58,077 nt of DNA from Pelomyxa schiedti (GCA_020536535.1 JAHLWZ010000242.1:1-58077), one strand, 5' to 3'. Shown: positions 14,336-57,282, counted from the stretch's first letter. Translations and numbers: made by a program. Notes: generated by a model not told the origin, from the letters alone.

Positions 14336-14347
14336 GCAGTTTCCAAC

Positions 14348-14367
14348 AATTCTTCACGTGAAGAATT
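14348..14367. repeat. Perfect 20-bp palindrome AATTCTTCACGTGAAGAATT at the Gypsy fragment boundary
   Basis: Self-reverse-complementary, read directly. Confidence 0.9.
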
Positions 14368-15357: not shown

Positions 15358-16864
15358 ATGTTCAAGACAATAGTCGGAGTTGCTGCGATTTTCCAGCATG
15401 GTTGTGTGAGTGCGAGCGCAGCAGCACCTGCCAGGATCTACTACGAAGGATTCGGGCCGCGCTTCAGTGCTGTTGACGGGTTCCAGGACGGATATATAGA
15501 CTACTTGCTGGTGCCCACCGCGGCGGTACCAGCACCCAAGGTGGGCGATCTCATCGGCGTCTCCGGCTGCCATAAAGCAAAAGTCGGGAGGTAATTTTTT
15601 TTTTTCCCCTTCATTTTATTTGCCTATTGTTGTATTTGTGGTGTTTAGTAGTAGTTTGTTGAGTTTTTTTAGTTTGTAGTACTAGGTTGAGTTTCGTAAG
15701 TAGTTTTGTCGTAGTTTGTTGAGGTTTTTCAAGTTTGTAGTAGAGTTTTGTTCATTCTGTTGGGTTTGTAGGGTTTTTTTTTCCCTTTTTTTCTTTTTTC
15801 CCCTCGTGAGATATCTTGTACTTGGTTTGTCTATAACTAATGTCGGTCTCACACAAAAAACTTAGGTGGTTTAAAAAAGTCTACTCAATCACTGCTTATG
15901 AAATACTTCCAGAGGGAGGTGAGCTCCCTCTGAGGGCTAGAAGCGCACTTATCACTAGACCATTGATCGAAGTCGTCCCGAAAGAGCCTCGGGAAAAGAG
16001 GCCCAGGGCTGCAGATCGTTACCCAAGCGAAGGAATCGCTGAAGCTATCATTGATACTCCACAGAACTTCTGCTTATCCACCTCAGCCACAGCAGCTGCT
16101 TCAAACACCACTTCGGCCTCGAACCGTGAAGATTCTCAGTGTCATGGGGAAGAAGAGACTTTGCGGGAAGAGGAGGAAACTACACCACAGGATCAGCTAG
16201 CAGTCATATCGCCCGTGATTTCCCGTGACGGTACGCCCAGCGTTACTTTCTCAGAAACTGTTTTTGGCGACCTGTACCACCTTGAGCAAGAAATACCCTT
16301 CTCCTTTATGGATGGGCAGAGCCTAGAGGAAATCAACAACAGGGCATACACGAATGGGATCGGGGTGATAGTAGGTGTGGTTTTTCCCCCTGTTTGCTAC
16401 TATAGCTGACTATTACTGCAGATGCCATTGTTAGCATCTACGAACACGTTACAGGCAATGTGTACCTGGCGGCATTCCTTGGCAGGACGCCAATTCGTAA
16501 GAACATTTTCCTCAATGGGAATCTGTTGAAGCACCTGCTGTCTGGTGAGAGAACTGAGCCCCGCACCAGTCTAAAGGTTGGAGAACTGCTCCTCTTGAAG
16601 GGGGCACAACTCGGTCCGAAAACCGAGTTTGGAAAGGGCAAGGAAGCCGGTACGTTGCCCATCATTCATTCTTTGCCAGTAATAACACACTAAAACACAC
16701 TTGCAGACATCTTTATGTCACTGCCAGAAACTGGATGGTTGTGGACATTCTCCGAAAACTCGGCAAGTTGGCCGCTTAAGTACGTTGAGGAGACAAAAGC
16801 ACTCAAGCAGTGGGTGTTCAATACAAAGGAACAAGAACGCCGCAAAATGAAGAATTCCTCATGA
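15358..16864 (+). CDS. Multi-OB-fold (POT1/TEBP-alpha-like) protein, paralog A; splicing of the middle part uncertain
   Basis: Exon 1 YYEGFGPRFSAVDGFQDGYIDYLL..PKVGDLIGVSGCHKAKV. Later exons DAIVSIYEHVTGNVYLAAFLG, SLKVGELLLLKGAQLG and DIFMSLPETG..WPLKYVEETKALKQWV all align with the gene at 35646-37903. Confidence 0.7.
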
Positions 16865-18271
16865 AACCAATTAAACCAAACCCCAAAAAAAACAACGCCA
16901 AACGAATGAAGAGCGAAGAGAGAAACTTCTTTTTGTTTTGTTGCACTACCATCCCCCAACCAAACAGCTTGGATTTATTGTTGGCTTAGTTCTTTGCTGG
17001 AACAGAATGGTAGGTTTGTTTTTAAGTCTTTGGTGGCTCTGGGCTTTGGTGGTTCTTGACACCAGGTTGGTTGTGGGTTGGGTTCTGTTGTGGTTCGTAG
17101 GTGTTGTGACTGTTTGTGGCTTGTAAGTGATACTTGTTGTCATGTGAAACTTCTTGGCCTTAGTCATAGTGGGCTAGCCCTGTTGGTGGCTGGATTTCTT
17201 GGGGTTCGCGAGCGAAGGGGAACGGGAGCTTGGAGGTGTAGCCGTGGTGCTTCGGGTGGTACCGAGGTGCGGTCTTCGGTCTTTAGACTGGATCCACTCT
17301 TCACCAAAAAAGACGTGAGTGGTGAGTAGCAACCTTCGATAGTCCGCGAGGAATAGTGGAACGCACGCACACACCCCGTATGATTTGGGCCGGAGCTAGC
17401 CCGCCAGCTCGAAACGCAAGACAAGGTGGTAGGGGTCGGCAGCCTGGCCGCACATCACATCCAACTCTCCCCGCCAACAACAAAGCAGAGTCCGGAACAG
17501 TATCGCACGTGCCGCGGAAGATCTGGGTGATGAAACCGTGCCCCGGGCCCAGTCCACCACACCAACCACGAGGAGCGGAGGCCGACAAAACGAACAACAA
17601 CAACACCACCCCAGATGCAAACACGTGTCGTAGATCCTCTTCCCAGTGACACACCCGTTGTACAACCCCGAGTTGTTATTTAATATAAAATATTATTTTG
17701 GCGTGGAGTCCTTGGTTTCGAAACCGGCGCAGGGCATTAGTGCCTCGTCGATCCTGCGTGTTTTTCTTGCTGTAAGTGTGGAGCGCAACACCCGTTCTTT
17801 CGCCCCACGCAGCAGATCTCCTCAGTCTCCATGTGCCCCGCGAAATTCTAAGAACGGAAAGTACCATGTCAATTGCAGAAAGCAGACTCTATTCATATCC
17901 AAAATCAAACCAGCCAAGGAGACGGCCCTCGGGCGCGGACATACATGTGGGACTGTGGGAAAGACTCTCCCCTTCCGACCGAGGAGCTAGATGTGTTGGC
18001 CACAAAGCCCCGCGACACGGTGCGGTGTTTTTTTTTTTATTTGTAGAAATAATCAAGCAAAAAGACGCAATCACGCAAAACACGGCGCGTTTTGAACGTG
18101 TGTTTATTGGAGGATAACATTTTTTTTTCCCCCTTTTTTGCAGCAAAGCAACCGCAAACGGCCTCGCAACAATTGTAGCAATATCGTGAGTATATTCGGG
18201 CCAACAAGCCCGCGTTTTTTTTTTTTTTGATCATAACTTCACTGATATCTCGGTAGGATGGTGGATTAGAC

Positions 18272-19830
18272 ATGAATCCACCCCCTTCTTCAAGGGAGCC
18301 AGGGCGTCGCAGGAGAGCAACAGCGCATCGTGCTTTACCAAGAACAGGAGCCAACACTGCGATGAAGGTTGGATCTCTTTCTTTTGTTGTTCATTTGCAT
18401 GCCCCAAATACTCCTAACTCGTCCTCTCTAGATAAAACCATGGGCGAAACTATCCCTTTTTCAAACGGGGAATAGGGAATGGCTCGTTAAAGGTGAAGAA
18501 CTATCTTCTTCTTTTGATTCTCTCTGAGTTTCACCCATTTAGAAGTTCGAGCCACCTTTGGCTCCGACCCTTCATGCTCCCTGCTATGGAACGACGATGT
18601 GTCCAGGACTGCTGGTGTAAAGCCTGTGCATTTCACGTTGGAGATGCGCAGCGCCTCTGGGGGACCCTGGGACGAACCAGGGAACAAAAAGAAGTTTTGC
18701 AGACCTTTATTAATGTAGGTTCTCTTTATCTTTCCAGGGGTGACTTACTGTATCCCATCCCAACAACTTGCAGATGCCACGACCGTGTAGAGATTGGTTC
18801 TGGTTCTGTGCCAACAAGAGTCACATCAGCTGGACAATCTACCCTATTGCCAGGAAGATCAATGAAATCAGGAGCTCCTGTGGAACCCCTGGTTACCAAG
18901 GCCAGTCTTGGGAATCTCTTTTTTTTCTGATAATTCCTAACCATTCTTCTTCAGCACCTGAAATGTTGGAGCAAGTGGGTGATAAGCCCCGGACAGCTCT
19001 GGCCGACATGTGGTCGACTGGTGCTGTCTTGTACTATTGGTGAGTATTTTCCTTTGCACATTTATCCCTTCTCACACAATGTAAAACAGCTTTGAAGCAG
19101 AACCACCCTTTAAAAATCTGCAAGAAATGAAAGAGGGCAAGCTGCAGTTCAAGTCACAATCCTGGAACAACGTGAGCGCCAAAGGTTCGTTTCGCTCAGA
19201 CCTTCAAAGTAAAAATTAATTATGCCCTAGCAAAGCAGCTGATAGCGAAACTACTCTCCTGCGATCTCAGCGAGAGGCCCAACTGTGAACAGGCCTTGCA
19301 GCATGCATGGTTTACCTCTCCAGAGGAACCTGTTTACCCCCCCTGCTTGTACGAACCTTGACCCTACCGTTTCCCAGGGCGTGGCCAACAGTGGTGCAAG
19401 TACTGTAAACACAACTTCCGCGTCAAACGTGGCAGAACCATGTGACAATCTGCCTTCAGCACCGCGGGGAATGATGTCTCCACAAATTTTGATTCCCACC
19501 CACGAACAGCACCAGGACCCCAGGGCGGCACCCGCACCCCTCCTCCGATCTCCCGCCTCGCTCGCAGCCTCACCCCCCCCACCGTTGATGCCGCCGACCC
19601 ACCCTCCTCACTCTCAGGCCCAGTCTCAGTCCCACTACCGCTACCAGTACCAGTACCAAGACCAATACCTATACCAATACCAGTCCCAGCCTTCACAGTT
19701 GCCGTTTGACTTCCCCTGTGGTGCTGTTCCCTCCCCATTCTCGGCCTCCTCAGCATCGTCGGCCTTCTTCTCCTCGTCCCCATCATCGACAGGAAAATCC
19801 CCCGAGACTGACGGGGTTGATGAAATCTGA
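18272..19830 (+). pseudogene. FHA-like + CAMK kinase paralog with kinase subdomains I-VII deleted
   Basis: FHA-like exons (WAKLS..EVRATFGSDPSC..VHFTLEMRS..CHDRVEIG) match the kinase at 38019. The exon then jumps out of frame to ARKINEIRSSCGTPGY / APEM / ADMWSTGAVLY / PFKNLQEMKEGKLQF / LIAKLL..RP..ALQHAWF. No GxGxxG, VAIK, HRD or DFG. Confidence 0.8.
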
Positions 19831-19920
19831 AGAATACCATGACTCAGACTTCAAACCAACCAACTTAGGCATACACTACCCACTGTACAAATCACAGCAA
19901 ATCCACAACAAAACACGTGC

Positions 19921-20051
19921 AGCTGACAGTGATTCCAAAGACGAGCAGGGGTGGGGGTAACAGGGGTGGTGCAACTTTTTCATTGAAGCTCCTGGGCACC
20001 ACCACCCCTGTTGCCCCCACCTCCTGCTCGTCTTTGGAATCACTGTCGGCT
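19921..20051. repeat. Inverted repeat / hairpin, ~52-bp arms with ~24-nt loop
   Basis: AGCTGACAGTGATTCCAAAGACGAGCAGG-GGTGGGGGTAACAGGGGTGGTGC pairs with the reverse complement of 19997-20051, with a few mismatches. Confidence 0.95.
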
Positions 20052-20205
20052 TCCTTGACCTGTTGAAGTGCAGAAATGGTCCTGGTTCTTTGTATCTGTG
20101 ACGGGAAATTCTGAAATGTCTGGACCACATCCAGCCTCTGAGGAGCATCACATGGCAAGACCCCAAAAAATAAAAAGTCCCAAACTTAAACACAATTTGC
20201 CTCAC

Positions 20206-21881
20206 TCAATGATTTTCCAACCCTCTGGTGGGATTATAATAATTCTGGTGTTTCTGATTGCTGTTTTGATGGTTTTTTTTGGCTTTACATCCAGAAGCTA
20301 GTGATCTGGTCACAAAGTACTGCGAAAAAACCACGCAGTCATGGGCATGGTGTGTGGGTTCATCATTGTGCCTTCTCCTTGTACTTTTGTTTGATGAGGG
20401 CATGTTGCTGTCTCCCTTCAACTCTGGCAAGGATTTCATCAATGGGATCCACCATTTGCTCCACTAACGTGCAGGCAGTAATGGCGGCAATTGTGGCAGT
20501 GAATACATCAATGCCGCGGTGCACACGGAAAGAAACCACAAGTAACATGACCGGTACAACAGCAATGCATTCAAAGAGTGCCAGCCACCAATAATCCATC
20601 ATTGCAAATTGAATGGCTGCAACTACGAGGGACCCCACATGACCAGAGAAGAAGAAGTCATTTGTAGGGTGATAGTCAACAAAGAGAGTTGGTACATTGA
20701 AGCCAAACATCTGCCCTGCTTGGTTGTTAATGAAAGTAGGTAATAGGTTAATTCTTATTCCCAAAATTCCACTACTAGATACATATGAAAGGTGAGATTT
20801 AGCAATTACCTCGCGGCCACATAAAGTCAGCCGGACAAGGGAAAGTAGCCAAAAGTTGAGCCACAAAACGCAGCAGCATCAGAACAAATACACTCAGAAA
20901 CGGCCTGACAGTGCTTCTACAAAGTGCACCAATCACAAACAATGACAGGAACGTTGCATCAATGACGGCACTTGACACAGCCTGCGCCGCGGAGGCAACC
21001 GGTGGGTGGCTGTGCAAATACGCATTTATGGGAGCTGTGAGCGCGACCAATTTGTCATTAATGGCATCAGTCAAAAGTTCACTCCTCACTCTCAGAACTT
21101 CATCCGGGAGTGTCGGGCACGAGCCCTTTGAGTCCAAGGCCAACTGAAACACCACAATGAGCAATCCAAGAAGGGCCAAGAAGCAGATTCGTTTCGCTCT
21201 AGAAGCGGGAGCGCGAAGCAGCGTGATTCTAGAAGTAGCCACGACGCGGTACAGTTGCACGCGGTCGACGGCGTGGACGCGTATCTCGAATTTCCCGGCG
21301 TGCGGCGGCAACTTCTCACTGGGGAAAGTCACCTCCACAGTCTCAAAGTCCTGCACAGGTGCCGCAGCAGCAGCAGCAGCCGGCGTAGCGTGATTATTAT
21401 GGGACTTTGACTTCTTCTTCTTTGGCACTTGCGGCATCACAGGTGCAGGAGCCGTCGAAGAGGAGTCCTCGTTCGTGGCGCCAGCGAGATATCGAGGCCT
21501 GGGGACGTAGAGCCAGCGGCCCTGGGAGACTCCCGGGACGCTGGGGACCCCCACGGGGTAGATGCCGACCCAGTCGCGGTAGGCCCCGCGGGACGTCGGG
21601 GCCACCAGGGAGACGGTCACGGGCTGGCCCACGACGACCTCGGCGGGGTGCGCGGCGACGCGGTAGCTGGCCCACGACCCTGGGGGCCGGGACTGGGCGC
21701 CCCGCAGGATCCGCTTCTTGATGCCCGAGGCCTGCTGCGCGATGTAGGTCTTGCCCTTTTGGAGCGACATGGGCTTGTTGCTGCTGTTGGTCTTGTTGGC
21801 GGCGTTCTTGTTGTGCTTCTTATGATGGGATGCCGATTTAACCGTTGGTTTCCGCACAGGTTTCTTGGCCTTGGTCTTCAT
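20206..21881 (-). CDS. Lys-rich N-terminus + SKICH-like domain fused to a sphingomyelin-synthase/PAP2_C-like multi-TM phosphotransferase
   Basis: RDWVGIYPVG..WLYVP..VTFPSEKLP..GKFEIRV..VVATS (SKICH-like), then TM helices with NDFFFSGH and RVHRGIDV (SMS-type catalytic His/Asp motifs). Two predicted introns; the 3' end is inferred from splicing. Confidence 0.8.
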
Positions 21882-22192
21882 CGTTGGAGGGAGGTATTGG
21901 TCAGGCCTTTGGTTGTTATTTGTTTGGTGTTTGTGGGTCACCCATGATGTGGAGAATGGCCCTTATAAAGAGCCTGAGGTAAAAACAACAACCAACAGGA
22001 AATCGGCAGAAATAGGAGAAGTCAGACATGGAATTAAAAACCAACGAGAGATTTCCCACTTCACAAAGGCGAAGGGTTGAAAAACTCGAAAACGTGAAAG
22101 TGGCAGGGGAGTAATGCGCAGAACGAAGAAAGTGTCTGATGTGTTGAAGATCTTAACACTTGTGGCATTTTTGGGAGATCGGGAGATCCAGA
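21882..22192. promoter_or_regulatory. Putative ~310-bp bidirectional promoter
   Basis: Lies between divergent ATGs at 21881 (-) and 22193 (+), and is conserved in the copy at ~57520-57835. Confidence 0.5.
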
Positions 22193-24300
22193 ATGACGAA
22201 TGCGGATGGGAACGGTAGTGACACGACGACTCCAGAGGCAGTGGTTAGTATCTCAGCATCCTGTGAAGAAAAAGGTCGTTCATTTATTGTGTGTCACTTG
22301 GGTGGTTTTTTTACCGTGTTGTAGAGCGCCCGTATGTTGCAAATCAGAGACTTACGGAGGAGCAGAACAAAGAACGCGGAAATGAAGATGACTGCGTTCG
22401 CGGCGGATCTTGTGAACAGAAAAGCCACATATCAATTCTAGATCAGCGGGCACTTAAGACCAAAGAACATATTAAGATCGGTTGCCTACTGATAGTAGCT
22501 GTTTTGGCAACAGGTAATTCTGCATAGTACCTCACTTGAGTGTTGTAAGATTTGGTATTAGGATTCTGCCTTGTTTACCTGAAATTTGTGCTCGTTCCAC
22601 TCGTTCTAGCAAAATTCCTGCAGGTATTTGAGTTAATGTCTATTTACACTTAACGCAAATAGTACATGTTAGAGCCACTAGTTTCTTTCTTGCACAAAGG
22701 AATACGGCCCTGCAAGCAAATAGAATTACAATCTACATCACAATGGGAGGCCCCTGTTAATTGTAGGTGCAAGCAAACGACGCAGTATAATTGCAAGAAA
22801 AACTGCAAACAGGTTAGGCTTGGGCATATGCACATCTAACATAAGCCTGGGACAGTTTTGGTTCTATTGCAGGTTGCCTTATTCCCTTGCTGTAACAGTT
22901 TCACTGTTATTGGTATGCATGTAAATTACTTAGATTCATGCACTGTTTTCTTTGTATATTATAGGCCCTGGGACTTGTGATTCTCGTAGGGTTTTTAGTT
23001 GTTTACTCCTTCAGTGAAGTCATCCATGTAAATAGATACTTGTACCCTCAAAAATAAGTACAATAACTTGCACAAGGAAAAGGAGAAATACAAAGAAAGG
23101 GGAGAGGAATTGCTATCAGAAATAACTGTTTTCCTTTGCTCTCATGGATTTAACGTGACTGAAGCTAGTATTATACAAACTGTTGGTTGAAACATTCCCA
23201 TTCTATTGTTTACTGCTTCAGATAAAAGATAATGTGCCTTTCCCAACAGTCGTTGTTTCCGTTGCAGATTTACTCTATAAAACAATTTCAGATGTTGTCT
23301 TGATGCTTCTTTTTCTGGTACTGCCGAATACTTTTACAACTCTCACACTTGACAGGTGTACATGCTGTATGAAAGGTCTTCCATACCGATTGGTAAAAAG
23401 AACGAAAGAAACAAGTTGCAACTCGTTTTTTCTGCCCCAATTCATTGTATCTAAGAAAGATGAGACAGCAGATGAATAGTCAGATTCAACAATACATAAT
23501 CGCAATGGTAACAAAAAATCCCACTCCATGGCTCACTAATAGCTTTAGGCGTTCATATCTTTTTGTGTTGCTTTATTGTGCGGCCTAGTGCTTTGCTTGT
23601 TGCGCGTTGATCTATCTCTTGTGGTGGCTTTCCTAACGTATTGATGTCAGATTAATCCTACCCTGTTTTGAATTTACTTAGGTTCCTGTTAAATTTCAGT
23701 ATACTCCCCCACTCCTGTGAAATATTAATCTTCACAAGTTCCCAATTTTGGTCCAATCATTGCATGGATTCTACCCGTATTTCAGTTTCATAAATTCCAA
23801 TAATAATCTCCTGGCAGATACCTATTGTTCTGTTGGATCCCACCAAGTCCTGGCTGGCTATTTCATTAGTTATTCTGGTTCCTGGCTCTATTCGTATGCC
23901 ACTGAACTTCAGGAAGCGGTTTACTCCGAAAAATAGATATGATTATCGGCAATTTTGTTGCCCCTAAAGTGCTGGGAAAAGCCGTGGACCTTCATCCCGT
24001 AACCTGATTGAGAGTTATTCCTTGGCCATTCACCCTTTCTCCTCAGGTAACCGTGCTGCTAGCCCTTGTATTCTGGGCAGGTAAATCCTCCCAACGACTG
24101 TTTTGCCAACTCACCCAAACAAAGTCGTGTGGGGAGCAGTCGGCGCAATACTGTCTGTTCCGTTGATGGCTATCCTGAAAGTGTGGTGCGACCACGTACA
24201 GCACCCTCTCTTCCAAAACGTCGGGAGCCTACTCGGTAACAACAACAACAGTGCCGCTCCCGAAACGCCTCCCCCACCCACACAACATTCCGACCCCTGA
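22193..24300 (+). CDS. AI-2E family (UPF0118/PerM/TqsA-like) transporter, many small exons
   Basis: MTNADG..|ERPYV..LIVAVLAT, YLKFVLVPLVLAKFLQ|YMLEPLVSFL, LPYSLAVTVSLL, IPNFGPIIAWILP, IGNFVAPKVLGKAVDLHP|VTVLLALVFW|VWGAVGAILSVPLMAILK. This matches the AI-2E C-terminal signature. Confidence 0.88.
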
Positions 24301-24396
24301 GCGTACACCTCTCGTCCCATCACAAAAGGCTGAACCAAAAAGAAAAACCACCATCACTTCGCAGAAACACACCACTACGGGCGTTTGTGTGTTTCA

Positions 24397-26230
24397 ATGA
24401 ACCAACCAACACGAGACCCAGGCGGTACTGGAACGGGGGACGGGGCGCCGTCGCAGCCGCAGTCGCAGTGCATCGCGGTGCGGGTGTCGACGGCCAACGG
24501 GCGGCTGTTCAGCCTGGACACCCGCAGCAACGTGTCCATCGGGGTGCTCCTGCACGCAGCCATCGACCTCATGCACGGCAACCACCTGTCGCGCTGCGCC
24601 CTCGACGGCGTGTCCCACCGCTTCGGCCCCTCGTCCTCGTCCTCGTCATCGTCCACGTCTGCTGCCTTGATGTTGGCACCGTCGTCGTCGTCCTCGTCGC
24701 AGCTTCCTCCCTCTGGTCCAGGTTGTTGCCTATTAATAGTCGCATATATTGTAGTTATGGGATCCTTAAGTATGGGATTTTGTGTTTTCTCACACAAATA
24801 TCTCTTTATGTGCAGTGAATAGTGCTGGCATAAGCAATAACAGTAGTACTGGAGGGAGGAGGGATTGGCAGGAGACCAGGGCTGGTACAGCAGAGAGGGG
24901 TGATGTTGGAGTTTGTGGGGTGGGAACAGGTGTTGGGGGTGTAGTAGTGGGGTGCAGGTGCAGGGGCATGTGTGAGTGTGATGGGGAATGTGGATGTGAC
25001 TGCCCTGATTGCAGTGGAAACCACGGGAGCTGGGAGGGGGGTGAATCAGAAGGATGGGCTGATGATGACTTTGGACTGTTCTTGGGTGACAAGGAATTGC
25101 CGATCCATGCAACATGTTATGACTGTGGACTCTCAAACTGGGTTGTCATGAACTTGGCTCCAAGGTTACAAGAAAACCTGGATCCATATGAAATGAATGA
25201 AATCCATGAAAGCCCAAATAGAATCACACAATAAATAATCTCAATCAAGACAGGGGCCAATAAACATTACTGTTGTTGTGAATCCTGCCAGTGAAGATAA
25301 CGATTCAACATTTTCTGGTGACAATTGTGGTGACTGTGTGCACTTGCAACTAGTACGAACAACAACAGTGGCAACTGTTAAGCAACAGTTGGCTCTGTCA
25401 TATCAATTCTTACCTGAAAATTACAATATTACACTGTGGGGGGCACCACTTTCAAATGGTTCCAGCCTGAAGGACTGCTATATAACCGAAGGATCAATTT
25501 TGGGTCTTGTTCCAAAGAGAGGACCCAGAGTTTTACTGTGTGTGCTTTCTTAATGGATGTTTTTCAATTGAGACGGTCCTCCAACTCATTCAAATTTCAT
25601 CCAGCGAACCTTGTAATATTCCCATTGTCATTACAGTTGTTAGTGGGTCTGCAGAATTTCAATTCGTTACTCATCCTTGTGATACTGTCAAATCAGTGCA
25701 ACAGGAAATTGCTCGGAAGTGGAGTGTTCCCCCATCCACGCAGGCATTGATGTTTGCAGGACATATGCTTAGTGGCAATTCTACATTACATCACTGTGGG
25801 ATAATAGGAGGTTCTGTACTTCAGCTGCACATTGCCGAAAATGTACCTCTAATACTTAAAAACAAATCCTTCATTATTTAATCTTTTAGGGGCATCTTGC
25901 TACAGCGAATTCCCTTCTGTAAGTCAATACTACCCTTCGCACGTTTGTATCACGTTCTTATGCCCAAATTATTAATAAAGGGTTCTCGTCAAACTACTGT
26001 TCCGATCAGACAACCAAATAATCAAGTTACGTTCCATGTCCAGTGTGACGGTGCAAGCATTCAAAGAAGCGATAGTACTGTATTTGTCACAGAACGGCAT
26101 TCAACTCCGGTCATGCGATTTTCACCTTGTTGCAAGAGGCAGTGAGATGTGTCTAAACTCACGCACTCTTGCACAGTACCTTTGCGTCCCGTCATCCACC
26201 ACTTTGGCTCTTCTCCTCGTTATCAGGTAA
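24397..26230 (+). CDS. Tandem ubiquitin-like domain protein (four Ubl repeats; the first is split by a long insertion)
   Basis: IAVRVSTANGRLFSLD..., FGLFLGDKEL..TCYDCGL, TTVATVKQQL..LWGAPLSNGSSLKDCYITEGSILGL, DTVKSVQQEIARKWSVPPSTQALMFAGHML..TLHHCGI and TVQAFKEAI..LVARGSEM..RTLAQY. Confidence 0.75.
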
Positions 26231-26308
26231 TGAAATAGTATATTTTACCAATCTTACGAAGTAAGCAATGAAGTACGGGAGCCAACGAATTACATTTCTG
26301 ATTTGAAC

Positions 26309-26920
26309 ATGGATTCTCTATCTTCACCACTGCTTGACCAAATTCCCGTCGCACCGCAACGCATTGCTGATGAACCATATATAGAAGCCCTGCTTGGAAC
26401 CCAGGCAGTGAGTACCCCAAATCCCACCGGTGCCTATGTTTCCAACTTCACCTTGAATACACCAACCGCATCAACTCAACCCAACTTCCAAATCCACACC
26501 CAGCCGGCCGTGATCCCTAGCACACCGGTACCCCAAATGCAGTTCACAGCACCAGCACACACCGCTCCCCCACCAACCATGGTACACACAGCACTACTCC
26601 GTACAAGAAACTCCGAATGTTCCTTCCCAGTGAATGTTCTCTATGAACAAACCCAAACAGACACCGAAATAGTCTCTGCCAAATTCATGGTAAGGAGCTT
26701 TTCCCCTATCCAAAAAAGAAACCCAAGACAGCAGCAAACCCAGCCATCGCATTCCCACAAACAAACCAATCCCACAACTCAGTACTGACCAAACCAAACC
26801 AAACCAACACAGATGGGACCGACCGGCGAACCAGTATGCGGCTGGGTCACGATTCCAAAGTCACTCGCATCGACATCAGGCTCATTCACATTCGCCTTTG
26901 GGGGTTCCCAAACGTCATAG
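26309..26920 (+). CDS. Hypothetical Pro/Thr-rich protein, two exons
   Basis: ORF 26303-26788 plus a plausible GT-AG intron to MGPTGEPVCGWVTIP..GGSQTS*. No recognisable domain. Confidence 0.35.
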
Positions 26921-27154
26921 ATAAAAAGTTCCAGTTTTCATGGAGCATTCAGCGACTGCCCACGTCTTTGACGACTTCAAGCTTTTTACAAATACTTCGG
27001 CAAACGCGCTGAAAAAGTGACAGCAGATATTCCAATCGGCGAACTCTAGATTCGCAAATCTTTACTTTAATTAAATTGGCATTAACTCGGGCTTAGAAGC
27101 ATTAAAACACAACACCCTTGGTTATTAAACTGCCACCAACAGAATATACGAAGA

Positions 27155-29366
27155 ATGACGGACGAGGGAGTGCCGAGGGTGTGTGTGTTGTGTAGATCTT
27201 GTGGGCGGCTGTCTTTTTACGGACTCATTTTTTTCCCAACCACAAAAAGGAAGGAGATCCCACCAGGTCACGGTCACGACAAAGCAAACGACATCCAGAC
27301 ACAAACCACGGTTCGAGCGATGACAGCGAAAGCGGGCATCATCGGCACCACCATTCGCACTCAAATTCCCATTCTCACTCTCGGCCGCACACTCGCGAAC
27401 ACGAACATAGCTCCCACCATCACCACGGCCACCACCATTCATCTGGTGCGAGAAGTGACAAGCAGGAGCAACGGCAGGCGCCGTTCGTGGTGGAAGAAAG
27501 TCCTGTTGTTTCACCAGTCCCACAGGGGATGGAGACTACAACTACAGCGACAACTGCAGCTGATGTGACGACGCCTACTTTCAGGTTTGTTGACGCCTTG
27601 TGTATTTGAGTTTTTACTAAGCACACTTGGCAGTACCACGAATAGCAAATCTATGGCTTCAGTGTTTGAGCCAGTGGATGTTGAGAGCAACCACAATTCG
27701 TATGGGCTGTTCACACTTCCGAGTTGTTGTCTGGGAGATGAAAATACATCTCCAGTCAAAGTGGAACGCCGTCGCGTGTGGTTCGCTCTCGCACTCGTTT
27801 CTGGTCTTACTGTAGGTGGACTCGTAGCATATGAGATGATCATAGGAGCCTTCTACCTAACAGCTCTTTGGAATCCAATTGAAAACTTTAGTACTATGGA
27901 TGTGGCGTTGTGTAACAGAGATTATGGATGGATTGAGGATCCTTCACTGAATGTTGGGCGTATGTGGAAAACCTTTTTTTTATTTTGCCATGTCAACTTC
28001 AGTAGATCAAATTGTTGGGATATTTAACCAGTCGGCGATATTCAGATTCACAATTTTGGAGAATTCCACATCCCAGGAATGGATTGAAGATAGAGTGGCT
28101 GATAATACCTTTTGGTTTGCTCTCATATTTCCGGAGAACTATTCTGATATTTTGCTTGGTAGACCACCTTCAAACAATACACCTTAACCAACACTTCTAG
28201 GCTCTTACACTGGTTATCCGCATATTGACTCAAATGGGACATACACCAATCCTGTGTTGGAGATTTATGACGAAGGGAAACAATACACAACAACTCTTCT
28301 AATGAGAAAAGTGGTATGTTTGTGCCACTTTCTTAGCGTTTGCCAATTTCCCCAGGAAACTGCCATGTTCGACAAGATTAACTATGGTGCAGCAGAGCTT
28401 CTACATAGTGGGGACTTTGGTGCCCAAGATCCTGATGCTCCTCTCGGTGTTCTCGTCACCCCCGTCTACAGAACGGGAATCAATCTGCATCCTGTAGGAA
28501 AATATGGATGGTAGGTGTACTATCAAATGAGTGTCCTATTTACAGTTGTAGGTACTTTGCCTCATACATTTCCCTTGTCATATTATGGATCTCTGTTCTT
28601 CTGTCACATAACCTTGTCTACCTGACGTTTCACCGAAAGTTGACTGAATCCGTCAAAATGAAGTTCTGGGTGATGGCGGCTTGCCGCTTTGTTATGTATC
28701 TTCTAAGCTCCTGTTCTCTGGGACTGTTCACAGCAATCATCATTTCTTGGTATGACATTCCAATAACAAACGGTACTCCCACCCTGATCTTGCTTGTATT
28801 TCACACTCACTTACAGGATTTGGAAAGCTCTTTCTTTTGTATTGGCTTGCAGCACTGGCGTTCGCGGGGATAATGTACAACCCACTCCTTCCTCCTTCTT
28901 TCAAGCTGAGATTTTACGTAGGTGCCCTCTGTTTTCATACATGAGTGAAGGTGGAATGATAGTTGCCACAATGTTGCTGATTCTCCAGGTATAACTTTCT
29001 AGGGATATTCTTAGTACTGACTAACTTCTTACCAGCTTGCTACCTGCGATGGAGTCTATGCACGCGACACTCTTCCGCCGTTCTTCCATGGAGTGGGCCC
29101 CATTTTACCGTTTTTTCACTGCGTTCCAATATTCCGGTACATTACCCTTGGTGAGTACTTTCTTTGAGCTCTTTGTTTTTTTCTTACTCACAACAGGAGC
29201 TTGTCACAATTCTATTGGAGAGCACGTTGGGGTCCTGTTTGCATGGTTCTTGGGTGGCTTTGCCATCTCAATTCCTGGGTGGTACTGGGAAATTGGAGAG
29301 AAAGCACTCAGAATGCTACTGCCAGTTTTTATAGATGCCTTTGACCACTTCTCTAAGGCTGTGTAA
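27155..29366 (+). CDS. DUF3533/SNG1-like (YhgE/Pip-related) multi-TM membrane protein with His-rich N-terminus
   Basis: TM1 ending ALWNP, luminal domain with FWFALIFPENYS, motif NLHPVGKYG|YFASY, then several TM exons. The N-terminal exon is rich in His/Ser repeats. Confidence 0.7.
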
Positions 29367-30103
29367 AAAGAGTAAAAAAAAACAACAATTTTGTGTTTTA
29401 AATAAAGTTCATGGTTTTACTCTGCACCACGGTATTACAGAGAAATAACGAAAAAACGCAAAGAAGCGAACAGTGGATTTTGTTTAATTTCCTATAGGGT
29501 GATGATCCCAAAAAGAAAAAAGGCAAACCGACACATGAAAAAAAGAAAAAAAAGCCAAACAAAATATTTTTTGTTTTGACACCGCCCGCAACGCCCTGCT
29601 CAGTGACAAAAAGTTCGTCGTACATCTAAAGGTCGATCGCCAACATCCGTTCCACTCAGTGTCCCCGGGTTATACGAAAAACAAAAACAAAAAAACAAAA
29701 AAACATCGGTACAAAGCCACAGGAACATCACGCCAACAGCAACAGCTACAAAAGCACCTCTACACCACAAACCCATAATAGGAACACACCAACAACAAAA
29801 ACAAACAAGGCCCTACTCCTTTTTTCCCCCCCTATTCAACAACCCCCTTTCGAGCAATCCAACACCTCCCATAAGACCATTCCCTTCGTCAAAAACCACC
29901 AAGGAACCAGCCAGCCGGGTTGTTCCCCGGCCGTCATCGGCATCATAAAACTGCGCCTTACATTCGCTCATCCACTTGCACGACCAGACTCGTAAACAAA
30001 AATTCATACGCTCACTCACACGCACACATTCCCGCACAAACAATATAAGAACCCATAATTCCGACTGAGCCCCACAACACACACCACGCCACCGCTTCAC
30101 TCA

Positions 30104-33100
30104 ATGAAGTTCTTTGGCTTCAGAAGCCGTTCTACGTCGGCGCCTGTCAGCGGGCCCGCTGCATCATCGACATCGACATCAACATCAACTACAACTTCAG
30201 CAACAACAGGCACCACCCCATCATCTGCTTCGGCGAAACGATCACCCCTGGGGACTGACACAAGCGGGTCAAGTGCCAGCACCACTTCGAGAGTGTCTAT
30301 TGTTTTGCTCGGTTGGTTTATTCTATAACCTCTTCTGTATATACCAACTCAATTTCTTTTTTTAACCTGTTCTGCTTTTATAACTTAACTTGAAATTCAC
30401 TGCAGGCCCCCCACAGTCTGGTAAAACGGTATTGTTTAAACAATTTGGAGAGTATTGCAAGACTACTGACTCATCATCAACACATTCACCAACACCCCCA
30501 CATTCCACTTCGACTGCACCACCATCAACTGCATCAAACACAACAACCAGTTCATCAGCAGCCACTGCAACTCCCCCCTCTTCTGCAGCTTCCTCAGAGG
30601 TATGCAACTCAAACAAGTTACTTGTACGAAAGTCGGCTATTGAATTCATGCTGCAACTCATTGACTTGTCAAGTAAGCTTGGGCTTGAGGTGGAGGAGGA
30701 AAATCAGGTAGGAACAGTACACAGACCCTTCTTTTGTTTAAACATAAAATTAGGCAATATGCAACACGTTGCGAGACATCGATTTGAAAAATCTGGATGA
30801 AGTTGCATCAGCAAAAATTTCGTACTTTCCTAATCTCCTCATCGTTGGGTAATAATGGCATTCAGTGTTGACATTGCCAGATTGTACCACGACAAAGCCA
30901 TTAAAAAAGCTAGACGGAGCCCTATTTTCTCTTCTCGAGCCCAAGCAAAAATGTGTGCTCAATAGACAGTTCCTTTTTTTTTTTTTCTTAAAGTGGAAAC
31001 AAAAGTCTTTTTGAGAAGGAAAACAGTATATTTGAGGGCGGATTTGTTCCTGAAAAACTTGATATTCTTTCCGCATATGATCCCTCTCCAGACCAACCTT
31101 GCACAATTACGACTTCTAATACAGAGATAGAGTAACAAGCCCAGCTACATAACAATACAAGAGTAACAAATACAACAACTAGGCTCTCGGTCTTGTCTTC
31201 CAAACTGTTTAATCCAGGGGCATTACCCCCTAGTGTACCACCGCCATTTGTGTGCATTTTTGTTCTCCCTTTGGACAGGTACAATTCTTTCTTACATTAT
31301 ATTGAAGCCAACCAAATTCTTCAGGTTCGACTCGCATCTCGATCCAACTAAGGATCCTTCCACTACCGGTTCCTCCTCCTTCCATAAGGAGTGCACTAAC
31401 AATAATTTAGAGACCTCTGCAGCTACTGTATCTATTGTTCTGTAGTCAATTTTTTCCTAATATGGATAGGCCGTTCAGAATCCTTTAGTGCAGTCTATGC
31501 AAATGCTGGCGGATATAGTTAACACAGACGGAAAACTACAAGATACAAAACATGTGGTTGTTGTCTTATCGCATGCTGATGTCTTCGAGGCTAAGTGCCA
31601 GAAAACTGATTTGGCGTGTTGTTTCTCCAAGTTTTCTGGTTCATCCCTTTGTAGTATTTCTCTGATTTAATGTAAATGTTAGGTGGTTGTGATCCTGATG
31701 CTGCTCTGAAACATGTGACAACCGAAGTGTCAGCAATTTTTTCTGCCAAAGAACGTTCCTACAAAGTTCGTTCTGCTTCCACTCCTGTATTTCTCTAATT
31801 GGCTTTTTGTAGTACACTGTGTTCTCGGGCTGCTTATTGGAGGACTCGCAAATGTCACAAGTTCTTTCTGAAATAATGACACTCTCCAAAGCTTGTGCCG
31901 TTCCCATTACAGTGCGTTTTACATATGCAATATCTTTACTAACAATTACAACTCTTAGCCAAAATCACCCACACTGGTGAGCCCTTCTGGTACAGCACCT
32001 GTCCCATCCTCAACTTCCGCATCTGCTTCAGCATCAACAACTACAAGTGCTGCAGCTTCGCCCTCCCCTAAAAAGAAACTAAATATAAAGCCTCAGAAAA
32101 CTGCAGAGAAGAAAAAACTCAAATTAAAAGTAGGTTTATACATGACATTCTCACCAATGAACTCACTCTTTCAAGTCAGGTGCAGGAGAACTCCAAGGAA
32201 GAAGGCCCACAATGGAGGATACACATATAACATCTGACTCTGTTGTTGTTGATGGCATTCCAACTAAGATTCAGTTAATACAGATAACATACCAAATTCC
32301 GTCACCTCTGACATCTCCAGTGTCTCCCTATACGGTGTCTTTGATGGACATGGCGGGTCTGAATGTGCACATGTAGTTGCAGATACGTTGCCAAGAGAAA
32401 TATTTGCTGACCCACAAATATTATGCGGAGAATTCGAACAAAATTTCAAAAGTAGCTTTGCGCGAATTGATCAGGTAGATGACTGTGTTCTTTTCGCTTT
32501 CTTACCTCCCCAGGCGGTAATTCCGAGGTCTGGGAAAAGTGGTTCCACTGCAGTTGTGGCAATACTTTTGGATAAAACTTTACTTGTTGCAAACCTTGGT
32601 GATACTGAATGCGTTCTTGGTACCCTGGGCTCCAGTGGAACTTACCAGGTTTAACTCAAGTTACCCATTACTCTTATAATTCTTCATTGTTAGCCGGAGC
32701 TATTGTCTAAGAAACACACTCCCGGAGATGCCGAGGAAAAAACGCGAATCACATCAAATGGAGGATTCGTTTTCTCTGGCCGTATTTTTGGCACACTGGC
32801 CGTCAGCCGGGCGTTTGGAGATGCTGGCTACAAAGTACACAACTCTACACACTTCTTCCTACAAAATCTCTGACAAGTATTTCAGAAATTCGTGGTTCCA
32901 GATCCACATGTTACTATAAGACCTCTCACTAGGAAAGACGGCTTTCTTATTATTGCATGTGATGGGTGAGTTACTTCTCCCAATATTTGCACTAATATTT
33001 CTTAGTCTATGGGAAAAATTCAACTATGCTGAAGCGGTTGAAGTTGTTGCCTCCAACAAAGAGCTTGGCCGTTCACCTGAGGCAATAGCACAGCTGCTAT

Positions 33101-33171
33101 GTACCCAGGCTTATGAGAGGGGTTCCTCTGACAACATCACTGTTGTGGTAATTCTTTTCACTTGGGCATAG
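30104..33171 (+). CDS. spnA: Spalten-like protein: divergent G-alpha domain + S/T/P/K linker + PP2C phosphatase
   Basis: G-alpha-like: IVLLG|PPQSGKTVLFKQ, LYHDKAIKK, FVPEKLDIL, VVVLSHADVFEAK..CCFSKFSG. PP2C: GRRPTMED, YGVFDGHGG, GSTA, VANLGDTE, LAVSRAFGD, IIACDG|LW, GSSDNITV. Same architecture as Dictyostelium SpnA. Confidence 0.88.
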
Positions 33172-33358
33172 AGCAAGCCATTGCTTTCCCTTGTCTGAGA
33201 ATTGTAGAAAAAAAAAAGGTTTTGTTTTTGAAGATACGCGTATCTTTCTCCGAAGGCAAAATTGGAAAAGGAAGAACAAAACTGGGTTTTGTGGATTATT
33301 AAAGACGATCTACACTACAACTAGTTGTAACGAGTATTCACAACACATACAGAATTAC

Positions 33359-34257
33359 TCAGTACGAAGACAACTGTCTAGGTAGACCACAGTCAGGGGG
33401 AGAAAACCGCAGTAGACCGAACCCATCATCGCCGTCCTCCTCAACAGAGTACAAGCCCCTGCTGATTTTCCCGGGACTCGGCAGCAGCCCGTAGAAGGTG
33501 GCGCTCATGGGGCTGAGGGTCACGGGGGAGACGGACGGGGACGAGGCCGGGGACACCGGGGAGCAGGAGACCGGCGGGCTGAGCGAGCCCCTGTGGGGGT
33601 ACGAGTTGGAGCCGGGGCTGGGGCGGGAGTGCGTGGGGCGCGGGGGGAAGTAGCAGGCGTCCGGCTGCAGGAAGTCGTCGTTCATGACCACCGGGTTGGT
33701 GGACCGCCGCGGGGGCGAGCACGAGTAGGTGACCAGCGAGCTGCTGTTGCTGCAGCAGCCCCCGGCTGAGCTGGCCGGCTTGGGTGTCGTCGAGCACGAG
33801 AGCATGGGGGTCGTGGAGTGCTGGCGGTGCTGCTCGAGGGGCGAGAAGCAGCTGGGGCCGCACTCTTCGTCGTCCGCGGGGGGCTGCTCTTGCGAGTCCT
33901 CCATTTCGAACGGCAGGAGGGCGGGCTGGGACGAGCGCAGGCCCGAGAATATCAACCACAGCTCCTCGTCGACTTCCGAGGGTGGGGGCGGCATCTCTTC
34001 GACTTGTGCGCTGTGGAGCTGGAGCTCGTGCTCGCCCCTGCTGCGATAGAACAATACGTTAGTCCCTTGTTCTGGGGGAAAAAAAAAAGAAAAAAAGGGG
34101 GAGGAATGGGTGAGGCGAAAGGTCAAAATAAATGTGTGGATGCCTCAATCCCCGGGTGTGTTGTGTGAGGTTCAACGTTGTGGTTTTATTGTTTTTTTTT
34201 GTTGTTTCGTCGTAGTGGCGACGAGGAGTACCATGCTGAAGATGTCGAAGGTTTCAT
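33359..34257 (-). CDS. Hypothetical Ser/Pro-rich protein, two coding exons
   Basis: GC3-rich long exon (ORF 33359-34126) preceded by a branch point and AG. The short exon MKPSTSSA splices in frame. Confidence 0.55.
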
Positions 34258-35645
34258 AGCTTTCGGTGCAAATATGACACGCTCGCCATGGTGTCTACTG
34301 CAACAGTACGTTAGTTCCTTGTTCTGGTGGAAAGACACAAAGTACAGACTACACGATAACTAACAACAGACAAACAACGTACTCGAATTCGCATGTCATT
34401 GAGGAAAAGAATGAAGGCTTGCCGACGGTTCGTCTTTGGGGTTGTGGTTTGGAGAAAAAAATTTGAAATGCAAGAAAATGAAGAACCGACGGCCTTATAT
34501 TGGAACCGCAACTGCGGGGGCATCAAAATCTGTTACCATATCAGGAACGCCGTTGGGGGATCTGAGGACGAAACCTGTGCTCAGCCCCTTTTTTAGTTTT
34601 GGAAGATAGACGAATAGCAAAGAAGTTCCTATCGCGTCGCTTCAAGGGACACTCCGATTGCTCGATCTTAAATTTAATTTGGTTTGACGATAGGCGTGGA
34701 ACAACAACCAGTTGTTCGTTGAGGTTCTCAGGTTCAATTGAACAACTGTCCAGGAAGCCACTGCACTAGTTAGAACCCGTTGGAAACATTTCAGTTTTGT
34801 CCATTTGGAGGTGAACGTTGGGGGCCACCTCATAATACAAATCCTTGGCCTGACCAGTATTGCTGCCTCGAAGGGTTCAATTTGGAACATACGATGAATT
34901 TGGCACGGTAAGGCCCAGAACCTGCCACTCTTGGGCACTCAGGCTCCTTAAATGCAGTGAGGGTCTCTGCGATAAGGGGTGTGTTAGGTACATTTGTTGC
35001 ATCAGTTGTCACTTCTACAGTGACAACAGCCCGGCCGTCCTCTGCAGGTACGTGCACAATTCGGCATTCACGCTCATTCAGCGTGGTTCGGTCACTTACT
35101 TGCATAGTACTTCGTTATGAGATGGATGTATGTCGCCGTACAGAATCGGTGGCATGTAACATCGCTGGGGTAGATCTCCCGTCTCCTAACATCTCTTTGG
35201 TTTTTTGGTTTCCTTTGTTTCTGATGAAGACGAAATGATGGGTCCAGATAAGGGAACCGGGCACTTCTTGCAGATTGGTCAATCCGTGTTTGCAAAGAAT
35301 AGAACCCAGTTTGAGGCTCTCACTGGACCAAGTAAAGGTGCACCCATGGTTCACAGGGCAGCAGGTGGAAACAACACCGGAGGATGTGCACATGATGGGT
35401 TCCTCTTAAGTCACCCATCCCCCGACGACCCCACCAGCCCACACCTCATTGAGCCACCTTCCCAACAGAAAAAAACTGTTTTGAATAAAAACAAACAAAC
35501 ATCTCTCTTCTTCTTTTTTTTTTTTCAAAATTGCTTGAATGGAAGGGAAATGTTTGGCAAAACCACCAAAGCATAGGTGTGGCGAGGTGACTTCGCGTCG
35601 CTGTAGTTCTAAGTACGGTTCTAATCACTGATGTATTTCTGTCTG

Positions 35646-37903
35646 TTAGTGCCTCGCACTGCTGGTTTCCTTGGAGGGGGTGGAACCGCAGTGCACTCTT
35701 GTCCTCAAGCTCTCGGCATACTCGAGATACTCCCGAGGCCACACTGTGGAATCGGGTGTGTAAAAGCACATAAATCCACTGTCGGTAAGAGATAGGAAAA
35801 TATCTGCAGTTGGTGTTGGGTGCTCAGGGATTGGGGAAAAACTCTGGGTGGAAGGTTGAAGAATGTACCTGGATTTCTGTCCTTATCTTGCTTGTTGCCA
35901 AATTCCGCTTGTTTCAGCAGTACAACTTCCCCAGCTTTGAGGGTGACTACGTCTTGTCTGGCCACCCTAAGGCACGATTTCTTCAGGAATACCTTGTGTT
36001 CCTCCCCAGGGTGGCCGGGGAAGAACACTGTGTAAATACTTCCGGTCTCGTGCCTGACAATGCGGACCATGGCATCTGACGGAACGAACAGGTCAGACAC
36101 CGTGCCAAACTATACAAGGAAACACACCAACTTTGGCAAGGCAGTCCTTGCTAAGGCCCTTGAGGCTCTCTGCGGGAATGTGGTTATACGGAATGTCAGT
36201 CCTGAACATTGAAGGCATATTCGGTATATCACTGGTGAAGACAGTGCAATTCAATGCCCTGAACTGAAACACATCACCGCTCCTCGAGCCTTCACATGTT
36301 CCAGATAAAAGGTGCAATTCACCAATCTTCAGACTTGACATCTCGAAACAAGCTGTAATGAGTGCTTCGCAACCCTGCAAACGGTGGGTTTTGTGTTACG
36401 GTGCGTTAGTTCAACAAAAAAAAGAAACATGGAAACTACCTTGCGGTCCACTGCATAAAATTTATTCGCAGATAGTATCATCAGACAGCGAATTACAACA
36501 TTGCCGTTAGAATTCCTATTGGACTCATCGAACGTGCTGAGGGCTATTACTTCTGGTGACTCGGAAGCCCCCGGGGTGATCCCTGTTGTAGGCTCCTCTG
36601 GTGTCTCGGTCTCTTGGTGGTAGTATCCAACTGTTGGTGATGTAGTAACCCGAGTCTGATTGCCAAGGGAACTAACAAAAGGTGAATTTGGTGTTGCTTG
36701 TGCCTTTGCCATATCCTTTTGCAATTCTGCCAAATTTGTAGAGCCTTTGACCCTGGCTCCGCTTGCACAACACAATAAAGGGGCCTCATAGTGTCGAAGG
36801 GAATCGAGAGACGAGGGTGGGGCACTGCAAAATCCCTCCTGGGGTGCATCGGCTTCCAGGTGGCAGTGCTCAATGGGCGGAATATCTTTTATGGGAGGGT
36901 CAGAGGGTACAACGGGCATTCTGTCAAAAGCAAGTGAAGCTGCTGTAGTATTCTTTGAAGTACGGGACCCGGACTCTAGCTGATGGGGAAGAACGTGAGA
37001 GGCATCAGATTGGTATTGGGCCCATTCAGGAAGCGGAATACTTCGATTTACAATGCCAAGATCATCATCAAATTGGCATTTGGCCCATTCAGGAACCGGT
37101 GGGGTGTCTGTTCGCTCTATAATTGGAATAATTCCATTTCCAATGCCAAGATTTGAAGCATCAAGCCAAACCGAGCCAGACGACCTCGAATCCGTGGGAC
37201 TGTTTGTGCTTGGCGTACCACATACTGAAAGTGGTGATGTGTCAGTTCTCTCCGTTCCAATTCTGGTACTAAGTTATTTTAAGAACGGGACAACATATGA
37301 TACACACACCTCTGCGACGAGCAGCAGTTATTCTTCAACCTTTTAGCCACAGGGCTGTAGTCTTCTTCTCTGTCAAGCATAGAGGGCGGGTGGAGGTCAT
37401 ACTGACTCAGTGATGATTGGAGCTGGCGGTTTGTCCTGAATGGGATATTTCCACTGGGTGGAAGAACATAGTACTGCGTGACGCAGTGCACCTTTTTTGC
37501 CCAACTGGCGGCGAGATACGGTGGTGAGGGGCGGGACCACAACGGCAGCATAAAGGAAAGGAAACAAATAATAAACAATGCGCGCGACAACCAGCACAAC
37601 AAACAGCGAAGGGAACCGGTACCTAATGACAGACGCCCTGTGGGAACGGAGTACGGCCACATGGTGGCCGACCCTGATTGCCGCGGCGGCGGGGTCGTTG
37701 AAGAGTACGTTGATGATGCCGTCCTCGAAGCCGAATGGGCTGTAGCGTATGGCAACGCCGTCGTAGTATTTGTCGTGAGGGGCTTCGTCGTCGTCTTCGT
37801 CGTCGGCCGGTATGCACTCGCTGATGCTGATAATGGTCAGTACCATCTTGAAGGGTCGTGTTTCCGGGCCAGATCCCGCAACGGCATTGCTGTTCGGCTG
37901 CAT
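35646..37903 (-). CDS. Multi-OB-fold (POT1/TEBP-alpha-like) protein, paralog B, three OB-like repeats
   Basis: Repeat 1 YYDGVAIRYSPFGFEDGIINVLF..IRVGHHVAVLRSHRASVIRY, repeat 2 NVVIRCLMIL..SSLKIGELHLLSG, repeat 3 DAMVRIVRHETG..TLKAGEVVLLKQAEFG..DIFLSLTDSG..WPREYLEYAESLRTRV, with a P/S-rich linker. The fold assignment is an inference from motif resemblance. Confidence 0.75.
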
Positions 37904-38018
37904 GTTGGGGCGGTTTGGGCTTTGAAAACTAAATTGCCTGGAGTGTTTGCGACGCCACTACCATCAAAACACCTTTCACGGAACTAATAAAAAAAAACCC
38001 CGAGTGACAGCGACGCAC
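37904..38018. promoter_or_regulatory. Putative 115-bp bidirectional promoter between the OB gene and the FHA-like kinase
   Basis: Divergent ATGs at 37903 (-) and 38019 (+). Confidence 0.55.
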
Positions 38019-57070: not shown

Positions 57071-57182
57071 CCCGCGATCGGGGGAATTTTTTTTCCCCTT
57101 CATTTGGTGTGCACACAAACGAAAAGGAAAAAAAATTAGGTTTTTGGCTGTTCTCAGCATCCAGCCCACACTGAGTCCTGCA

Positions 57183-57282
57183 NNNNNNNNNNNNNNNNNN
57201 NNNNNNNNNNNNNNNNNNNNNNNNNNNNNNNNNNNNNNNNNNNNNNNNNNNNNNNNNNNNNNNNNNNNNNNNNNNNNNNNNN
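57183..57282. other. Assembly gap (100 N)
   Basis: Run of N. Confidence 1.

Follow-up and report, generated by a model that had tools for sequence, protein, structure and literature searches.

Contig JAHLWZ010000242.1 of the Pelomyxa schiedti assembly GCA_020536535.1 (58,077 bases, analyzed whole and referred to below as the window) carries two genes that raise the question of whether this giant, multinucleate, anaerobic archamoeba has its own family of POT1-like proteins with multiple OB folds. Gene A lies at 15358-16864 (+) and gene B at 35646-37903 (-). Both coordinate pairs coincide with the limits of coding sequences, and both genes are intact and spliced; their products are listed in GenBank as the hypothetical proteins Pelo_3153 (A) and Pelo_3161 (B). 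A first-pass annotation had proposed that A and B are diverged paralogs, that their N- and C-terminal domains both resemble the first OB fold (OB1) of POT1, and that they may represent an expanded, lineage-specific family binding single-stranded DNA (ssDNA) or telomeres. The explanation slightly favored here is that they are ancient paralogs combining an N-terminal OB barrel, a linker, and a C-terminal domain with OB-like element order, that they act as tethered ssDNA-binding modules, and that they are not demonstrably POT1.

Paralogy and Family Size

The two genes share four collinear exon pairs that are 29-43% identical at the amino acid level. Identity is 38% over the whole N-terminal exon (41% over a 49-residue stretch, pairwise blastp E 2e-7), 43% over the first 28 residues of A exon 2 and its counterpart (E 4e-8), 34% over the whole exon encoding the C-terminal domain core (32% over 68 residues, E 1e-9), and 29% over the last exon (33% over 36 residues, E 4e-9). 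In the same order, Smith-Waterman z scores are 12.3, 11.5, 15.7, and 12.5, with none of 2000 shuffles reaching the observed score in any case. Intron positions agree as well: each of the three introns of A matches one in B (introns 1, 4, and 5, respectively) in both codon and phase, at R/S after KVG/SVI, at D before AIV/AMV, and at D before IFMSL/IFLSL. All the shared blocks quoted in the first-pass annotation are present and aligned, namely YYEG..RFS..GFQDG / YYDG..RYS..GFEDG, DAIVSIYEHVTG / DAMVRIVRHETG, LKVGELLLLK / LKAGEVVLLK, and DIFMSL..WP.KY / DIFLSL..WP.EY. Judged by sequence and intron position, A and B can be considered paralogs beyond reasonable doubt, much as first proposed, and the duplication that produced them is old.

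Further members were sought at several scales. A third copy was not found within the window. An exhaustive HMMER search of 1.84 billion representative proteins with the N-terminal-exon profile returned A and B only, as did the A/B alignment when run against 5.8 billion proteins in a word-indexed (k-mer-prefiltered) search; nr assigns both to P. schiedti. The same word-indexed search with the C-terminal domain alignment or the large exon of B found nothing, nor did two pattern-seeded scans of JGI metagenomes. The exhaustive search thus covered the N-terminal exon and the prefiltered one the C-terminal domain, and the count of paralogs is one of annotated proteins. Within these bounds the family appears so far to be species-restricted, with two members, and the suggestion that it is an expanded one is not sustained.

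That it is unusual, and lacks any Pfam domain, does hold: Pfam searches with exon pieces, and hmmscan searches with the full proteins and separate domains, gave no match at E<=10, PF02765 (the POT1 family) included. Searches of NCBIfam and PHROGs likewise gave no match. Searches of PDB sequences (phmmer and hmmsearch with exon profiles, full proteins, and a C-terminal domain profile, E<=10) gave no POT1 or TEBP chain, only rows at chance level.

Domain Structure

Each protein consists of an OB-like domain (residue 1 to ~100) followed directly by a 120-270-residue low-complexity linker and then a C-terminal domain of ~150 residues. AlphaFold2 models were built from alignments of two or three sequences only, and their confidence is consequently low.

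The N-terminal domain is the better modeled of the two. The mean predicted local distance difference test (pLDDT) score for the whole of A is 36, with residues 1-95 at 50-66; these form a compact five-stranded barrel of ~95 residues, with a mere loop between strands 3 and 4. In a VIA-align comparison with 48,161 chains, the best match was PriB (4gs3), with 83 of 90 residues aligned, a root-mean-square deviation of 3.1, and a Z score of 9.2, above the 7-8 quoted by VIA-align as a typical best score by chance. Others included PriB 4fdb (Z 8.2), a further PriB (7.9), human SSB (7.7), and Stn1 chains (6.9). Judged by their titles, all of the best 50 matches are OB folds, including SSB, RPA, the anticodon-binding domains of AspRS and AsnRS, TPP1, Stn1, Teb1, CTC1, and TEBP-alpha. 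Foldseek gave weak matches at best (E 7e-3 to 5e-2 in the top rows), for the most part to OB-fold entries: Rfa1 N-OB/RPA70N (including complexes with Ddc2 and ETAA1), SSB, PriB, Pot1pC, and ribosome entries that we take to be ribosomal protein uS17. A shape search of the ESM Atlas gave RPA70-like, OB_Ssb-like, and SSB clusters, every one with a template modeling (TM) score < 0.5. An OB fold is the best reading of this domain, as had been proposed, and on these models a probable one; the predicted barrel looks like a generic SSB/PriB type rather than a specifically POT1-like one. Aromatic and basic residues conserved here are YY, F, W, KK, and Y.

For the C-terminal domain the indications diverge. 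Its secondary structure is predicted to run helix, b1, b2, b3, helix, b4, b5 (two strands), and a long helix (A residues 347-374), an order that fits an OB fold with a terminal helix. By ESM Atlas features its nearest named clusters are POT1 PF02765 (0.90 and 0.89), OB tRNA_anti-codon (0.89), and RFA/RPA (0.88-0.89), and the best ten named clusters all belong to one clan; whole A gives the same families at 0.85-0.88, with POT1 PF02765 at 0.88. By the calibration of this method, scores near 0.9 are leads only. The three-dimensional model of the domain alone (mean pLDDT 44) matched no OB fold in the structure search; it is not a barrel, and its best match (Z 4.8, longin/roadblock/GAF-like) is at noise level. 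The element order and the Atlas neighbors thus speak for the OB fold originally proposed and the model does not; overall, such a fold seems fairly likely here. Conserved aromatic and basic residues in this domain are H, Y, F, K, W, and Y.

The two domains were also compared as possible copies of one domain, and this was rejected (hhalign E 0.44, shuffle z ~0-1.3). The proposal that both resemble POT1 OB1 is therefore not supported either.

The linker is ~120 amino acids long in A vs. ~270 in B. It is acidic (net charge -12 in A, -14 in B), rich in Ser, Thr, and Pro, and probably disordered. There are five [ST]P sites in the whole of A and 14 in the whole of B, and one and three SQ/TQ sites, respectively. 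Within exon 3 of B, at 37003-37152 of the window, the linker-coding DNA has degenerate direct repeats: one match of 34 nt lies 63 nt apart, and a second repeat of 28 nt recurs at 90 nt spacing. The corresponding peptides (PVPEWAKCQ / PLPEWAQYQ and LGIGNGIIPI / LGIVNRSIPL) are possibly a short linear motif.

B is longer than A by virtue of its longer linker and an extra small, beta-rich module (residues 395-489) ahead of the C-terminal domain. Part of this module, SLKIGELHLLSG (B residues 448 onward), resembles SLKVGELLLLKG of the C-terminal domain, with a shuffle z of 6.1 and an hhalign E of 0.005 over 21 columns; the hhalign run excluded the 11 residues overlapping the C-terminal domain profile. 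The equivalent region of A has two gaps and only a remnant, FGDLYHL, so that A appears, from the alignment, to have largely lost the module. The earlier description of three repeats in B, the middle one mostly missing from A, therefore survives at the level of motifs.

Comparison with Known Families

POT1 has an N-terminal tandem of OB1 and OB2 and a C-terminal OB3, into which a Holliday-junction-resolvase-like, TPP1-binding domain is inserted. A and B have no OB1-OB2 tandem and no recognizable OB3 or TPP1-binding part, and a long linker separates their domains; the first-pass annotation was right that the layout is not that of a canonical POT1. The kinship to POT1 itself found no backing in the profile and PDB searches described above. 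Their likeness to POT1 and TEBP-alpha lies in the C-terminal domain: in its nearest Atlas clusters, in a G-[DE]-hydrophobic run that precedes strand 4, and in a terminal amphipathic helix (A-L-+-x-W/R-V). The last two resemble the motifs GDIVRFHRLKI and EALRVWA of human POT1 OB1. By the sequence methods used, membership of A and B in the POT1 family cannot be demonstrated.

Other candidates fare similarly. The likeness of the N-terminal domain to bacterial PriB and SSB, its best structural matches, is at the level of fold only: identity is ~10%, there is no PF00436 or NCBIfam match, and SSB and PriB are single-domain homo-oligomers, whereas A and B are intron-containing eukaryotic genes encoding an additional linker and C-terminal domain. 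RPA70 is suggested by the Rfa1 N-OB and RPA70-like entries heading the Foldseek and Atlas shape searches, respectively, and RPA/RFA proteins (including archaeal RPA) are feature-space neighbors of A and B, with modules likewise joined by flexible linkers. In contrast to RPA70, however, A and B have no Pfam match to REPA_OB_2, Rep_fac-A_C, or tRNA_anti-codon, no zinc ribbon, and far fewer OB modules, and the shape matches stay below a TM score of 0.5. Like the Stn1-Ten1 and RPA32-RPA14 pairs, they have a long predicted terminal helix on the C-terminal domain and are two paralogs that could pair, and Stn1 is among the N-terminal domain matches; unlike them, they lack winged-helix domains, and there is no sequence match. 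Since the comparisons with POT1, RPA70, and SSB failed or came out undecided, A and B are placed here outside every named family, as an OB-fold variant that is new and so far restricted to one species.

Gene Models and Transcripts

Gene models (Table 1) were derived from a six-frame reading and from the DNA around frame shifts, giving products of 375 amino acids for A (four exons) and 636 for B (six exons). Introns are GT..AG throughout, with lengths of 47-275 nt; for intron 3 of B, this is after a one-base shift compatible with the RNA joint. The B model is identical, residue for residue, to P0001 (Pelo_3161, 636 amino acids), and the A model to P0002:212-586 (Pelo_3153, 586 amino acids). The GenBank model of Pelo_3153 begins at 13459 and has 211 additional N-terminal residues from upstream exons (window 13459-15357). 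Because these have no counterpart in B (Pelo_3161), whose start is only 115 bp from the neighboring gene, the start of A was taken as 15358; no homolog of the extra residues was found either. The extension is probably an over-extended gene model and the ATG at 15358 the likely start codon of A, to judge from the comparison with B; the reading frame is open upstream of this ATG, and so is compatible with a longer start too. An exact look-up of the 375-residue product in public assemblies gave no record.

Table 1. Exons of genes A and B and the kinase genes beside them, in window coordinates.
Feature	Position	Strand	Content
A exon 1	15358..15590	+	Strands 1-4 of the N-terminal OB-like domain, making up most of it (motifs YYEG, GFQDG, PKVGDLIGVSG); residues 1-77 and 2 bases of codon 78
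A exon 2	15866..16374	+	Last N-domain strand (WFKKVYSITAYEILPEGG, until ~15932); acidic S/T/P-rich linker, 15933-16304, including middle-module remnant; C-domain start from 16305
A exon 3	16422..16649	+	C-terminal domain core (DAIVSIYEHVTG ... SLKVGELLLLKGAQ)
A exon 4	16707..16864	+	Last strands, long C-terminal helix (KYVEETKALKQWV...), stop codon
A neighbor, 427-amino-acid protein kinase gene (GenBank, Pkinase)	17380..19830	+	Downstream of A, same strand; part conserved with B neighbor, ~18540-19315
B exon 6	35646..35803	-	C-domain end, C-terminal helix region, stop codon
B exon 5	35869..36075	-	C-terminal domain core (DAMVRIVRHETG ... TLKAGEVVLLKQ)
B exon 4	36128..36374	-	Second half of middle module (SLKIGELHLLSG at 36332-36315); C-domain start from 36206
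B exon 3	36440..37262	-	823 nt; S/P/T-rich acidic linker; first half of middle module from 36556
B exon 2	37310..37504	-	Last N-domain strand (WAKKVHCVTQYYVLPPSG), then linker start
B exon 1	37623..37903	-	N-terminal OB-like domain, strands 1-4
B neighbor, FHA-like and CAMK-type kinase gene	38018..40533	+	Head to head with B; start is the coordinate of the first-pass annotation

RNA contigs from three runs (single-cell transcriptomes filed as "protist metagenome") were placed on 35300-40100. Four of the five B introns are confirmed as joints in these contigs (37310/37262, 36440/36374, 36128/36075, and 35869/35803), and RNA support covers exons 2-6; no contig in the three runs covers exon 1 and intron 1. 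The longest RNA contig stops at 37356 and continues into adaptor-like sequence, presumably the SMART template-switch adaptor, so that its end there is read as a cDNA end. Within the B coding sequence there are nine differences between RNA and genome, five of them synonymous. All three in the C-terminal domain (codons 566, 572, and 623) are synonymous; the four non-synonymous ones are in the linker (codons 235, 257, and 277) and the C-terminal tail (codon 633). This pattern agrees with a constrained domain and a freer linker, although the numbers are small.

In the 3' untranslated region of B, ~50 nt at window positions 35578-35632 have a DNA depth of >1000 in run X4 vs. ~9 elsewhere in the locus. 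Both DNA and RNA contigs branch here into several different continuations; the stretch is a high-copy element.

Neighboring Genes and Repeated Elements

Each paralog has a protein kinase gene beside it, though in different orientations. For the one next to B, the contig's GenBank gene table has no entry, and RNA contigs that map to it show a spliced GT..AG intron (39892-39939). An FHA fold is weakly indicated by one of its exons (Yop-YscD_cpl E 0.002, FHA E 0.23, both below Pfam thresholds), while others match Pkinase. The two kinase genes share tblastx blocks of 46-62% identity (38320-40023 vs. 18542-19313) and are, by this comparison, paralogous to each other. The simplest history would be that a block of two genes was duplicated long ago and its orientation later rearranged.

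The tail of the kinase gene beside B encodes long TS and QP repeats (~40137-40500, with a TS/QP simple repeat at 40137-40241). Three copies of one repeated element lie at 40686-41409, 12320-13255 (inverted), and ~9500-9840, with ~75-98% identity in translated comparison; two of them flank the two OB-kinase loci, and the element may represent either a transposon or what is left of the segmental duplication. Elsewhere in the window, 56891-57586 (-) and 20799-21941 (-) carry a near-identical N-terminal part of a SKICH/sphingomyelin-synthase-like gene (MTHKHQT.NNQR.DQYLPPTMKTKAKKP...); the former copy is near the contig end and is broken by a run of Ns, and either recent duplication or an artifact of assembly may account for it. 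An open reading frame of 249 amino acids at 52578-53327 (+) looks, by eye, like a retroelement integrase core.

Possible Functions

If A and B are built as the models suggest, with an N-terminal OB barrel of ~100 residues, an acidic linker, and a C-terminal alpha/beta domain of ~150 residues ending in a long helix, the conserved aromatic and basic residues of the two conserved modules could allow them to bind single-stranded nucleic acid, with ssDNA the likeliest ligand. The modules would then be beads on a flexible acidic tether, as in RPA- or SSB-type proteins; for the terminal helix, a part in pairing is conceivable, on the pattern of RPA32/RPA14 or Stn1/Ten1. A and B would derive from an old local duplication that also copied the adjoining FHA-like kinase gene. 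Tethered ssDNA-binding modules are a best guess at function, and a purely inferential one. Several points weigh against it: no OB family was detected by any sequence-profile method; both structure models are of low confidence, from alignments two or three sequences deep, and that of the C-terminal domain is not a barrel; shuffled proteins reach Atlas scores of 0.9 in 4-10% of cases, and lists all from one clan in a third; OB folds bind proteins and sugars as well as nucleic acids; and RNA evidence for the pair is limited to exons 2-6 of B.

Much of this could also be accommodated if A and B were simply lineage-specific, fast-evolving proteins with a fold other than OB in their conserved domains, the OB signals being artifacts of low-confidence modeling or embedding of beta-rich sequences. 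Mean pLDDT values of 36 and 44, non-OB best matches at Z < 5 for the C-terminal domain, the lack of any family profile match, and the calibration of Atlas scores near 0.9 as leads only are what would be expected. This is nevertheless judged unlikely: the same clan is indicated by two independent methods, it was named from the sequence before any tool had been run, and for the N-terminal domain the Z score of 9.2 over 83 of 90 residues exceeds the 7-8 expected by chance, with all of the best 50 rows reading as a single fold. At the other extreme, A and B could be very divergent homologs of POT1/TEBP-alpha, binding the ends of telomeric G strands, with the C-terminal domain corresponding to POT1 OB1. 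The PF02765 clusters are the nearest named feature-space neighbors of both whole A (0.88) and the C-terminal domain (0.90 and 0.89), the strand 4 and terminal-helix motifs recall the human ones, and Schizosaccharomyces pombe Pot1pC and TEBP-alpha are among the weak structural matches of the N-terminal domain. However, generic SSB and PriB rank ahead of telomere proteins in the latter, the C-terminal domain model is not a barrel, no match to PF02765 or to a POT1 or TEBP chain appears even at E<=10, and an OB domain, long linker, and further domain are unlike an OB1-OB2 tandem with C-terminal OB3. POT1 may moreover be recognizable in this supergroup, since a candidate from Dictyostelium, also an amoebozoan, has been reported to align with human POT1 at both ends (PMC6759168). 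Distant POT1 homology is accordingly rated as improbable, and nothing in the analysis ties the pair to telomeres.

The neighboring kinases suggest another role, in which the OB fold is a protein-binding module of RPA70N type and A and B are adaptors or substrates of the FHA-like kinases, with the Ser/Thr-rich linker phosphorylated and then read by the FHA-like domain. A functional link between OB-like protein and kinase is possible: a paralogous kinase adjoins each paralog even though orientation differs between the loci, the best Foldseek rows for the N-terminal domain are Rfa1 N-OB/RPA70N, including the Ddc2 and ETAA1 complexes, and the linkers are S/T/P-rich, with the [ST]P sites counted above. 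Yet a single segmental duplication would explain both adjacencies without any such link, SQ/TQ sites are few, the Foldseek E values are weak and VIA-align puts PriB and SSB first, and the FHA assignment (E 0.002 and 0.23) falls short of Pfam thresholds; an adaptor role, too, is considered unlikely. A combination of kinase association with the preferred reading of A and B as tethered ssDNA-binding modules can also be imagined, each ssDNA-binding protein, as an invention of the Pelomyxa lineage, forming with its FHA-like CAMK-type kinase neighbor a duplicated two-gene module for DNA-damage or chromosome-end signaling. This is rated as improbable, with no better chance than POT1 homology; were it true, the module would be a lineage-specific substitute for, or addition to, the axis of RPA/POT1 and checkpoint kinases.

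Implications

For now, A and B remain a pair of hypothetical proteins whose assigned fold is plausible and model-based; this helps annotation, and its general interest is modest. Should the proteins both have OB folds and bind ssDNA, they would add a new family to the large OB-fold "genome guardian" group, one for which the searches run detected no relative by sequence. Parts of the genome-maintenance machinery would then be open to invention, or to divergence past recognition, in little-studied protists, and the pair would offer an entry point to how Archamoebae protect ssDNA or chromosome ends.

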